Of a stretch of 64,000 nt of DNA, positions 24,990 to 28,293 are shown piece by piece (within the stretch, counting starts at the first letter, position 1; every line of letters starts with the position of its first letter). The translations under genes were made by a program, and so were the position numbers. The notes beneath the pieces are model-generated. The model was not told the origin of the DNA, made no database searches, and saw only the letters and a program-made list of their open reading frames with translations. The stretch comes from Obrimoposthia wandeli (Eukaryota): positions 62,001-126,000 of the forward strand of contig CDROCS010003914.1 of assembly GCA_977020255.1 (NCBI GenBank), in the 5' to 3' direction.

Positions 24990-25188
24990 GGCCAGGGGTT
25001 ATTGAAATTAAATAACTTTTCGTTTTAAATGTTTTTGTGGCTGCAAGAGGAAATGTATTGTAGTTGTTATAATATTTGTATACAAATAGATAGATTTAAA
25101 AATTTGTTCACGAGCAAACTTAGATTTGACCGTTATTTTATGTAGATATGGCATCGTCAGGTTTTTATCAATCAATGGATGGATAGAG

Positions 25189-26490
25189 ATGTTTAGAAAG
25201 GTTGTGTGGTTTTTTTTGTTGGTGTTATTCCTGCTTGGTGCCCTTGCGGGCGGTTATTATTTCTATCAGTACAAAACCAAGCAACTCATCACAGAGTTGG
25301 TAGAGCAGTTTTCCCCGATTGCCGATATTGGGTTTGATCAAATTAATGTAGATTTAGAAGGTAAAGTTGAGTTGTTGGGAGTGAAAGTTTCTCCGCTTGG
25401 CTATAAAGATAATGTACATATCGATCAAATTGATATTGTGACTGATGACGTTTGGTCTCTACTTTCTGCTAATACTTGGTTTAAAAATAACCTCCCACAG
25501 AATTTGAATTTACAGCTATCTAGTATTATTTTTAATATTGATGCTGATTTTTTCCGAAGCGATGAGCTTTCAGCTAAGCAGGCGGTGACGCAGAAAACTA
25601 TCTGGGGATTGGCTTGCGCAGAAGAGGTAAGTTTTGTTTCATTGGCGAATAGCTTAGGTCTAACAAAAGTCCAAATAGATTCTCAAATCAAGTTACAAGC
25701 AATTAGCTCAAATAGAGAGCTTAGAGTAGCGGTTGCTGTAAGTGCGCCGGGCCTAGCAAAAAGTTTATTTGAGTTTCATTTGACGAGCAAAGTCCCTTTA
25801 AATTTTCACGATAGAATTGTTTTAAGCCAAACCGAAGTGGTAAATGGGCTGTTTAATATTAGCGATGTAGGTTTCAATATTAAGCGCTTGAAGTACTGTT
25901 CAAAAGAAGAAAATATTCCCGAGAGTAATTACCCTGACTATTTTAAAGCGGCTGTGCAGCTTAAAATGATTGGAGATGAAAAAACGGACCTTGTGGAACT
26001 AGAACAAAGTGTAATGACTTTTTTTGCGCCAAGATCGAATGTGTTAATGAGTTTAAAGCCAAAGGATTCATTATTTTTACCGGAAGTATTTGGGCAGCAT
26101 TTTGATTTCTTTAAATCAAAAGATTTAACGCTTAAAGTAAACAAAAAAGAAGTTTCAACTCGTTACTTGCCTTTATTAAAAGGCCACAGCATTGCAGTGC
26201 TTAAAGTTGATGATGACAAAGATGATGCTTTACTTGCCGATATTAAAGAGCAAGCCAAGAAAATAAAAAAATTAGATAATACACCGCGATATCGCAGTAT
26301 ACCTTTAGCTGAATTAGAGGGGCTGGTGGGCCAAGAAATTCGTCTAAAAACATTGTTAGGTAAAGAGCTTGATGGTGTATTGTTAAAATTTGAAGAGAAT
26401 AAGATTGTAATTCGCCGCCGAGTTGAGCAAGGTTTAGTTACTTATCCCATAATCAAAAAAAATGTCGATAGCGTTAAAGTTTTTCGTTAA
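25189..26490 (+). CDS. Hypothetical membrane-anchored protein
   Basis: N-terminal TM helix (VVWFFLLVLFLLGALAGGYYFY), beta-rich body, compact C-terminal ~60-aa barrel-like segment; ends 5 bp before xerD. Start could also be TTG at 25126. Confidence 0.75.
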   Translation: MFRKVVWFFLLVLFLLGALAGGYYFYQYKTKQLITELVEQFSPIADIGFDQINVDLEGKVELLGVKVSPLGYKDNVHIDQIDIVTDDVWSLLSANTWFKNNLPQNLNLQLSSIIFNIDADFFRSDELSAKQAVTQKTIWGLACAEEVSFVSLANSLGLTKVQIDSQIKLQAISSNRELRVAVAVSAPGLAKSLFEFHLTSKVPLNFHDRIVLSQTEVVNGLFNISDVGFNIKRLKYCSKEENIPESNYPDYFKAAVQLKMIGDEKTDLVELEQSVMTFFAPRSNVLMSLKPKDSLFLPEVFGQHFDFFKSKDLTLKVNKKEVSTRYLPLLKGHSIAVLKVDDDKDDALLADIKEQAKKIKKLDNTPRYRSIPLAELEGLVGQEIRLKTLLGKELDGVLLKFEENKIVIRRRVEQGLVTYPIIKKNVDSVKVFR

Positions 26491-26495
26491 CAAAA

Positions 26496-27413
26496 ATGGA
26501 CAAGCGGGTTAAAGCATTAAACGTTGAGTTAATGGATCAGCAGTTAATAATGCAGTTTGTAGAGTACCTTGCTCATTTTAAAAAAATCGCGCTTAACAGT
26601 AAGCTCGCTTATGAAAGAGATTTGCGCAGTTTTCAGCACTGGCTGAGCGATAGTCATTTGCATTTATTAGACGTTGATAATGCGATTGTTACTCAGTATC
26701 TATTGTGGCGTATGAGTGAAGGCTTTAAGCCTAGTACTAATGCTAGATCTGTCTCATGCTTGAAGAGCTTCTATAAATACCAATTATTGCAACGAAATAT
26801 AAAACAAGATCCTTGCTTTGGTTTGAAATTACCTAAGGTCGTGCCTCTTATTGGGCCTGTACTCACAAATAGTGAGGTAGAGCAATTACTTGCAGCGCCA
26901 GATATAGACACATCGTTAGGTGCGCGTGATAACGCAATGATATCGCTGCTGTATGCAACGGGGATCAAAGTGTCAGAGTTGATTGGTTTACGCGTTAGTG
27001 ATTTAGATTTAACTAATGCTTTGTTAACTATTAAGAAAAAAGCGGGCGCAGCAGATTTCCAGCAGCGTACAGTACCGATTACTAAGGAAACTTGTGGCTG
27101 TTTGCGGCACTATTTAAAAGATTCCAGGAAGGTTTTTTTACAAAAGACGGTTAGCGAGTGGCTATTTTTAAATCGCAGGGGACAGAATTTAACTAGGCAA
27201 GCTTTTTGGTATCGTATTCAGTATTACACTCAGCAGTTGTCACTTAAAAGTAATGTTTCTCCACAGCTGCTGCGTCGTGCCTTTGCAGTGCATTTATTGG
27301 AAAATGGAGTGGATTTAAAGCAGATGCAGAAAATGTTAGGACACAGTGCTCTATCTAGTACTCAAATATATTCGCAAATTAGTTCATATCGATTACAATC
27401 AGTTAGGAACTAA
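26496..27413 (+). CDS. xerD: XerD-like tyrosine recombinase with degenerate active site
   Basis: Syntenic (xerD-dsbC-hom-thrC) and aligns along XerD (AYERDL, LYATG, TRQAFW, LGH...TQIY). GLRVSEL is GIKVSEL and PHVLRH is PQLLRR. Confidence 0.8.
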   Translation: MDKRVKALNVELMDQQLIMQFVEYLAHFKKIALNSKLAYERDLRSFQHWLSDSHLHLLDVDNAIVTQYLLWRMSEGFKPSTNARSVSCLKSFYKYQLLQRNIKQDPCFGLKLPKVVPLIGPVLTNSEVEQLLAAPDIDTSLGARDNAMISLLYATGIKVSELIGLRVSDLDLTNALLTIKKKAGAADFQQRTVPITKETCGCLRHYLKDSRKVFLQKTVSEWLFLNRRGQNLTRQAFWYRIQYYTQQLSLKSNVSPQLLRRAFAVHLLENGVDLKQMQKMLGHSALSSTQIYSQISSYRLQSVRN

Positions 27414-27467
27414 TTACCTCCTCCCCTATCAAAATATTCTACTTAACATTCATGCTTTGGAACTCTT

Positions 27468-28238
27468 ATGCCTTATAAAAAATTTTTAATGACCGCTTCT
27501 TTAAAAGCTATTTTCGGTAATGCTGTTGCTGCGCTTTTATTATTAGGTGTCAGTAGCAGTGCTATGGCACAAACTACAGCACAATTGATACATGAAAGGC
27601 TAAATGCTAGTGGTGAAAACATACAAGTTGCATCTGTTATTGAAAGCCCGTGGAATGGAATGTACGAAGTTACATTGAAATCTGGAGCGGTGTTATTCTC
27701 TGATGAAAAAGCTGAGTATTTTGTGCTAGGGCAAATGCTGCAATTGAATGAAGGCGATCGCATTGTTAATTTATCAGAACAAAAATTTCAAAAGCAAGTC
27801 GCTTCTGAATTAGCGGCAGTACCGGGCGATCAGCAAATTATATATAAAGCTATCGGCAAGCAAAAAGCATCGGTAACAATATTTACGGATATTACTTGTT
27901 ATTACTGTCAAAAATTGCATAAAGCTATCCCTGAGTTACAGAAAAATGGCGTAACCGTGAAATATATGGCTTTTCCAAGAGCGGGGCTTAAATCAGAGGT
28001 CGCACAGCAAATGAGCGCTATTTGGTGCGCTAAAGATAGTACAAAAGCGTTAACAGATGCTAAACGTGGCAATAAAATAGATAGTGTAAAATGTGATGAC
28101 CCAGTGGCTGAACAATTTTTATTAGGACAGCAACTAGGCGTTAATGCAACGCCGACTTTATTTACAGAAGAAGGTGTTAAAATAGCTGGTTTTGCGTCAG
28201 CTGAAAGCTTGCTACAAGATTTAAATATTACTCAATAA
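27468..28238 (+). CDS. dsbC: Periplasmic disulfide isomerase DsbC
   Basis: Signal peptide, FTDITCYYC, MAFPRAG, cis-Pro loop NATP; follows xerD. Confidence 0.9.
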   Translation: MPYKKFLMTASLKAIFGNAVAALLLLGVSSSAMAQTTAQLIHERLNASGENIQVASVIESPWNGMYEVTLKSGAVLFSDEKAEYFVLGQMLQLNEGDRIVNLSEQKFQKQVASELAAVPGDQQIIYKAIGKQKASVTIFTDITCYYCQKLHKAIPELQKNGVTVKYMAFPRAGLKSEVAQQMSAIWCAKDSTKALTDAKRGNKIDSVKCDDPVAEQFLLGQQLGVNATPTLFTEEGVKIAGFASAESLLQDLNITQ

Positions 28239-28293
28239 TCGCTGGGCTGAAGTCAATTAAGCAAACAGTGTCGCCAATCTGCTATTTCTTTTC

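Follow-up and report, generated by a model that had tools for sequence, protein, structure and literature searches.

An XerD ortholog with a variant active site and its altered XerC partner in an Oceanospirillales lineage that includes Osedax symbionts

The tyrosine recombinases XerC and XerD, acting at the chromosomal site dif, are regarded as a near-universal and highly conserved machine, in which XerD, activated by FtsK, exchanges the first pair of strands and XerC the second. Departures from this scheme have been described. Integration of CTX phage proceeds through one strand-pair exchange, which is finished by host functions (PMC3442271 and the review PMC5357621), and the XerS/difSL, XerH/difH, XerL (Legionellales) and archaeal XerA systems each consist of one protein and a near-palindromic or otherwise special dif, often with the gene adjoining it. 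The gene considered here lies at positions 26,496–27,413 (forward strand) of the window, by which is meant the whole analysed stretch of 64,000 nucleotides (contig CDROCS010003914.1, positions 62,001–126,000, of assembly GCA_977020255.1, filed under Obrimoposthia wandeli), and its intact open reading frame (ORF) encodes an XerD ortholog of 305 amino acids with a variant active site, designated XerD*. The window is part of a 330-kb bacterial contig (C3914) within a 1.35-Gb mixed assembly (G000) containing the host and many bacteria, the contigs of which could not be binned.

The variant XerD has been inherited vertically as the xerD of a lineage of Oceanospirillales to which the Osedax symbionts Rs1 and Rs2 belong, and it is accompanied by an even more profoundly altered XerC (XerC*). 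Because both proteins are altered, yet dif and both genes are conserved, chromosome separation in the bacteria of this clade probably follows an unusual course. It is likely that one of two situations obtains: either XerC has become a pseudo-recombinase that works with a single, non-canonical XerD active site and with host resolution of the junction, or XerCD-dif has become a purely structural organiser of the terminus. The literature searched contained no paper describing such a remodelled pair or a natural lineage with a dead XerC and, as far as that search showed, either situation would be the first case in nature of XerCD with its structural role separated from its catalytic one.

Identity and active site of the window XerD*

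The initial annotation had described the gene as a syntenic XerD with an intact frame, and both the ORF and the gene order bear this out. The order at the locus is ffh-rpsP-rimM-trmD-rplS-(454-aa gene)-xerD-dsbC-hom-thrC, and the position of xerD-dsbC downstream of the rpsP-rimM-trmD-rplS cluster makes the gene a positional ortholog of xerD. In a Pfam scan the protein scored above the cut-off for both PF00589 (134.8 bits) and PF02899 (51.7 bits). Its top NCBIfam family is XerD (the equivalog TIGR02225), at 273.7 bits, which falls short of the curated cut-off of 329.6; XerC scores 220.3 bits. Alignment with E. coli XerD (1A0P) gave an E value of 1e-52, and the AlphaFold2 (AF2) model, with a predicted local distance difference test score (pLDDT) of 88, found 1A0P as its best Foldseek match, the top structural matches being XerD, XerA and XerH. 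Domain scores, fold and the presence of the nucleophilic tyrosine together place XerD* in the tyrosine recombinase superfamily.

Active-site residues were paired with those of 1A0P by alignment and HMMER, and the codons, all on the forward strand, were read directly from the DNA. Of the canonical set R148-K172-H244-R247-H270-Y279, two of the six residues are substituted and one is uncertain. At the position of the first catalytic arginine (Arg-I, R148) stands K158 (codon AAA, 26,967–26,969), and at that of His-II (H244) stands Q257 (CAG, 27,264–27,266), exactly as had been annotated. The annotation was equally right about what is kept: R260 (Arg-II, R247; CGT, 27,273–27,275); H283 (His-III, H270; CAC, 27,342–27,344); the nucleophile Y292 (Y279; TAT, 27,369–27,371); and the TRQAFW motif. 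Next to R260 stands R261 (CGT CGT for the pair, 27,273–27,278), where canonical XerD has His. It was right, too, about the missing HHPR tail, since the C-terminus falls at residue 288 of the 290-residue 1A0P chain, and canonical relatives run 8 residues further, to end in HHPRG.

The claim that the GKGNKER hairpin carrying K172 had been replaced stands only in part. The β2-β3 hairpin has indeed been rebuilt (K180–R191, KKKAGAADFQQR, 27,033–27,068). Numbering from R148, K172 is the Lys of 'GKG' and not that of 'KER'; HMMER places K182, the final Lys of KKK, opposite K172, then a four-residue insertion, and then Q189 opposite K175. The catalytic Lys may thus survive in the rebuilt hairpin: on this alignment K182 is probably the counterpart of K172, and it is K175 that has gone. 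The pLDDT of the AF2 model drops to 69 in the hairpin, and this catalytic Lys is known to sit in a loop of variable length that is difficult to align (Gibb et al., PMC2943603).

Studies of Cre bear on how such a site might perform. Cre has a strict requirement only for the hairpin Lys and the Tyr; its H289Q mutant is active, and natural Gln is known at the His-II position; R173K supports recombination in vivo but fails in vitro, and the substitutions of Arg173 reported as active are Lys and His, with Asn, Ser and Thr not among them (PMC2943603). Since the two strictly required residues are both probably kept, the window XerD*, with its K, probable K, Q, R, H and Y, would by this analogy be weakened but not necessarily dead, and the description 'crippled' was too strong. 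On the surface that contacts FtsK, E184 is kept as E198, and Y187 and W188 align with Gly and Cys, respectively.

An Xer pair remodelled once in the lineage

XerD sequences were taken from 41 related genomes and from database matches, and a quick IQ-TREE phylogeny was built from them. Twenty-five variant proteins form one clade, with a Shimodaira–Hasegawa-like approximate likelihood ratio (SH-aLRT) of 100 and a long stem (0.81), and the remaining relatives are canonical; the clade sits among the XerD proteins of related genomes, beside the canonical XerD of G009 (weak support, 74). An exhaustive search of database representatives added three clade clusters with the same signature, to give 28 sequences. 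The proteins closest to the window XerD* come from metagenome-assembled genomes (MAGs) labelled 'Oceanospirillaceae' (83% and 78% identity), followed at 43–50% by CP093399.1 (closed, 4.79 Mb) and by the Osedax symbionts Rs1 (closed, 5.06 Mb) and Rs2.

All 25 lack Arg-I, His-II and the tail, and S-T-x-x-Y replaces TTQIYTH, whereas Arg-II, His-III and Tyr are invariant in all 28 sequences and the Glu adjacent to Arg-I is strictly kept. The initial annotation had asked whether relatives share the changes of Arg to Lys and of His to Gln: the loss of Arg-I and His-II is indeed clade-wide, but the replacements vary, with K, S, N or T (never R) at Arg-I, and Gln at His-II in 80% of members, otherwise E or R. 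The residue after Arg-II is Arg or Lys in most members, and the hairpin loop varies in both length and sequence. Since the whole clade shares them, the substitutions are not sequencing errors, a possibility that the annotation had named; Logan contigs of the public run X1, which is probably from the source sample, carry the letters of the window xerD* identically and with zero indels. The same run contains a second strain of the window bacterium, with many single-base differences but no indels over xerD* and its neighbours (window positions 26,053–28,270). A related second species is represented in the mixed assembly by contig C6267, where the genes stand in the same order as at the window locus and XerD is again a variant (L046:5005-5922, minus strand), with Ser at Arg-I, Arg at His-II and 48% identity to the window XerD*. 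No XerD-like gene was found in two of the near relatives sampled, G003 and G007, which may reflect either a gap in MAGs of uncertain completeness or loss of the gene.

Substitutions of this kind are met elsewhere. Lys at Arg-I and varied His-II residues (twice Gln) recur in unrelated, otherwise complete-looking Xer-like lineages, so that a natural change of Arg-I to Lys seems to have occurred repeatedly among Xer-like enzymes. An independent group among the XerD of Bacillota (P0020, P0022, P0023, P0055 at L108:5001-5882, P0079, P0088 and P0109) has Lys at Arg-I and no GKG hairpin, but is otherwise intact at His-II, Arg-II, His-III and Tyr and ends in an AHPRA tail. The exhaustive search also turned up further single sequences in which Lys at Arg-I is combined with one or another residue at His-II. 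About 32 representatives of at least 420 aa (P0159–P0164, P0170–P0174 and about 20 more) rank among the best matches of that search; most are 620–750 aa long with two recombinase-like stretches, and could be either Xer-like proteins fused in tandem or gene calls that have run together.

The partner gene is altered more radically. The dapF-DUF484-xerC-yigB position holds an intact ORF of about 290–320 aa in contigs C1089 and C6248 of the mixed assembly and in G001, G006, G011 and G012. The syntenic xerC orthologs of the two related symbionts in the mixed assembly (L043:5673-6560 on C1089 and L044:5078-6031 on C6248) are intact ORFs without the Tyr and most of the active-site residues. XerC* proteins score 103–123 bits on the XerC model, for which the cut-off is 335, and two of the three scanned match positions 1–231 only. 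In alignments XerC* lacks the nucleophilic Tyr, His-III and the GKGxK hairpin with its Lys, and usually has neither Arg; it retains the N-terminal domain, the first two thirds of the C-terminal domain and, at its end, the Y..AHPRA tail. Its AF2 model shows a single low-confidence helix where His-III and Tyr would be expected. By its sequence XerC* is a pseudo-recombinase, certainly unable to cleave. The Xer pair as a whole has been remodelled, and this happened once in the lineage.

The initial annotation had proposed that dimer resolution here works differently or that the protein has been repurposed, and that general reading holds good; the specific routes it had named fare less well. Catalysis by XerC alone is excluded because the syntenic XerC has no nucleophilic Tyr. 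A second, canonical xerD is an improbable answer, as neither canonical xerC nor canonical xerD occurs in the two complete clade genomes (Rs1 and CP093399). Nor was there a conserved candidate for a single-recombinase replacement: in five clade genomes searched, two of them complete, no further Xer-like recombinase is common to all, and their remaining tyrosine recombinase matches look integron-type, phage-type or borne by insertion sequences (IS).

A pattern search for dif was made in nine clade genomes and in seven canonical genomes as controls. Each of the seven controls gave one site, and matches were obtained in seven of the nine clade genomes, six of them dif-like and one (in G002) doubtful. 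The dif-like sites have the canonical 11-6-11 arrangement, in which TCRTATAA is followed by a spacer of six A/T bases and this by TTATGTTAAAT; their XerD arm is perfect. Measured around the chromosome from dnaA, the site divides the genome 49/51% in Rs1 and 45/55% in CP093399. It is intergenic and flanked by ordinary metabolic genes, with no recombinase adjoining, and its spacer differs among most of the clade genomes compared, even between strains. FtsK with its γ domain, RecA and RuvC are each present in nine of nine clade genomes. One MAG (G005) contains two strain versions of dif (L089:267-294 and L096:1498-1525), with spacers TAATTA and TTATTA and differing XerC arms; an element integrated at dif was considered for these two sites and rejected, as they are overlapping contig ends from two strains. 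Short dif patterns are overwhelmed in the mixed assembly by an AT-rich host repeat, present on many contigs, in which ATAAACAATATTATGTTAAAT resembles the XerD arm. The flanks of the G001 dif point to contigs C2735 and C4396 of that assembly.

Selection on both genes was gauged from the ratio of nonsynonymous to synonymous divergence (dN/dS, omega), with dS close to saturation in most comparisons. Between the window and G001, omega for xerD* is 0.13 over the whole gene (dN 0.146, dS 1.1), 0.07 in the N-terminal domain and 0.058 in residues 251–305, which bear the retained catalytic residues and form the most constrained segment. For xerC* (C1089 versus G001) the value is 0.14. A codon-model fit gave 0.136 for 11 clade genes against 0.080 for 14 canonical relatives, and the genes neighbouring xerD* gave 0.03–0.11, the dN of xerD* being several-fold theirs. 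Both xerD* and xerC* are fast-evolving but clearly constrained, under purifying selection with an omega of about 0.14.

Among the neighbouring genes, that for a 454-aa membrane-anchored protein without a family match (25,126–26,490, forward strand) ends 5 nt 5′ of xerD*, and because of this short gap the two are probably co-transcribed. It was entertained as a clade-specific partner of XerD* and ruled out, since its homologs precede canonical xerD too, in relatives. On the other side lies dsbC (27,468–28,238, forward strand), the usual 3′ neighbour of xerD, followed by hom and thrC; the order xerD-dsbC-hom-thrC is matched in G011 and on contig C6267. About 130 kb past the window on the same contig (L045:6486-8027) there is a truncated tyrosine recombinase of 117 aa, consisting of the C-terminal part only, with a 371-aa ORF directly downstream that by eye resembles an IS91-type transposase; the whole looks like a mobile-element remnant.

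Possible explanations for the altered pair

The explanation that we tentatively favour is that a dif-bound pair persists in which XerD* is the sole cleaving subunit and XerC* its architectural partner, one strand pair being exchanged and the reaction completed without Xer. XerC* and XerD* would still form a heteromeric complex that occupies both arms of dif and is under FtsK control. XerD* alone would cleave and rejoin DNA, through a weakened or re-wired site made up of K158, K182, Q257, R260, H283 and Y292, perhaps assisted by R261, and would exchange one strand pair; the resulting Holliday junction would be finished by other means, for example by RuvABC or by replication. XerC* would serve as a DNA-binding scaffold and regulator. 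What points to catalysis by XerD* alone is, first, the asymmetry between the partners, in that over the same divergence XerC* has lost every catalytic residue and XerD* has kept three invariantly. Secondly, the XerD tail, which on the general model of reciprocal control would act on XerC, has been lost, while the XerC tail, which on that model would act on XerD, has been kept.

Several observations weigh against this proposal. In E. coli, dimer resolution requires the activity of both recombinases. In the clade genomes no element integrated at dif and no other footprint of ongoing Xer recombination was seen, and the dif of the window bacterium itself was not found in the mixed assembly with either exact or loose patterns. 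The hairpin Lys cannot be located in several members (Rs1 type, G012 and G005), and the variety of residues at Arg-I amounts to no fixed substitute; from their sequences, members of the Rs1 type, in which Asn or Ser replaces Arg-I and the hairpin Lys is missing, look much worse than the window XerD*. No gene in its neighbourhood has diverged as far as xerD* between Rs1 and CP093399, and this fast evolution looks like erosion of the catalytic centre.

The principal alternative is that the terminus complex is purely architectural, XerC* and XerD* binding dif without performing any chemistry, which we consider possible but rather unlikely. The tasks of such a complex would be to recruit or activate topoisomerase IV (Topo IV) for decatenation, to stop FtsK, or to unload condensin, and chromosome dimers would be avoided, tolerated or resolved elsewhere. 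In favour of this, XerC* is certainly unable to cleave; Arg-I, His-II and the hairpin erode differently in each sublineage; the dif spacer varies freely, and xerD* evolves fast. Tasks of this kind have precedents: inactive XerC K172A/Q mutants of E. coli restore Topo IV cleavage at dif, so that the role of XerC in targeting Topo IV is structural (PMC4865107), and the unloading of SMC at the terminus is a function of XerD in Bacillus subtilis (Karaboja 2021, through citations in PMC12322038 and PMC8357415). A purely structural role, however, gives no reason for the invariance of Tyr, Arg-II and His-III in XerD*, given that XerC*, for which binding would likewise be enough, has lost all three. 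Genomes of 5 Mb that encode RecA and RuvC should moreover form dimers, and no substitute resolvase was seen. MatP was not found in the clade or in the outgroups; a search for SMC (TIGR02168) gave zero matches in clade and outgroups alike, an uninformative result that probably stems from the way the tool handles long queries.

It is improbable that XerC* and XerD* target dif while a third factor provides the residues that they lack or carries out the second strand exchange; such a factor might be a trans-acting activator, a nuclease or another recombinase. In its favour, the docking tail of XerC* is kept, and half of the pocket remains in XerD*, with the Glu by which Arg-I is normally positioned; nor is FtsK the only known activator of XerD, another being XafT of TLC phage (PMC6744903). 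On the other hand, the five clade genomes searched share no tyrosine recombinase beyond XerC* and XerD*, the neighbours of dif are ordinary metabolic genes, and the 454-aa gene upstream of xerD* is not specific to the clade. It is more improbable still that the window XerD* is a spare paralog, with canonical xerC and xerD elsewhere in the same bacterium. Other contigs of the mixed assembly do carry xerC and xerD genes of the canonical type in large numbers, but the window copy occupies the ancestral syntenic place, and the canonical xerD genes inspected are on the contigs of other organisms: on C122 the gene stands in a separate dsbC-recJ neighbourhood, C506 amounts to a 3.8-Mb chromosome with both genes, and the others have a GC content of about 30% or 35%. 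The complete genomes of Rs1 and CP093399 contain no canonical copies. Finally, a host-associated bacterium might be letting a gene that it can spare decay neutrally, as the annotation had envisaged in naming dN/dS near 1 as a refutation, and the raised dN of xerD* and the failure to find XerD in G003 and G007 might be cited for this; it is scarcely credible and already contradicted, given that 28 of 28 genes are intact over saturated divergence, that omega is 0.13–0.14 (and far lower in the C-terminal segment), and that the cognate dif is conserved.

Comparison with known Xer systems

The clade amounts to a natural experiment, in which genomes of free-living size have long kept dif, FtsK-γ and both Xer genes under selection, with the chemistry of XerC deleted and that of XerD thinned. 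It can reveal which functions of XerCD (Topo IV targeting, FtsK arrest or condensin unloading) are selectable alone, whether one active subunit type suffices for dimer resolution, and how far the active site of a tyrosine recombinase can drift; closed genomes exist for Osedax symbionts within it.

With the canonical XerC/XerD-dif-FtsK system of E. coli the clade shares syntenic orthologs, the 28-bp layout of dif with an identical XerD arm, the position of dif opposite the origin, FtsK γ and the two-domain tyrosine recombinase fold. It differs in that XerC is without its nucleophile, XerD is without Arg-I, His-II and the tail and has a rebuilt hairpin, and the dif spacer is of A/T only, so that the standard exchange, XerD first and XerC second, is impossible. 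The loss of Arg-I has a parallel in IntDOT of Bacteroides, an active tyrosine recombinase without Arg-I at the usual place, where another basic residue takes over. The likeness is that activity may outlast the loss of Arg-I, and R261 would be a candidate substitute in XerD*; IntDOT, however, belongs to a different family and is a mobile-element integrase.

If the proposal of catalysis by XerD* alone holds, the clade would have in common with XerS/difSL, XerH/difH, XerL and archaeal XerA a single catalytic recombinase species. Unlike those one-protein systems, it keeps two proteins and a canonical, asymmetric dif, with no recombinase beside it. With the Topo IV scaffold of E. coli (PMC4865107) and the unloading of SMC by XerD in B. 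subtilis (Karaboja 2021, as cited in PMC12322038) it would, on the architectural reading, share a terminus-bound Xer with selectable functions other than strand exchange, whereas the known examples of those roles come from laboratory mutants or from enzymes that are also active as recombinases.

The proposed reaction would resemble the integration of CTX phage, in that one recombinase exchanges strands, its partner is architectural and host functions finish the junction. In the CTX reaction it is XerC that acts, and its silent partner, although fully competent, is kept from acting by the site; in the clade the partner, XerC*, is genetically dead, XerD* would be the active subunit, and the proposed reaction would be the chromosome's own housekeeping.
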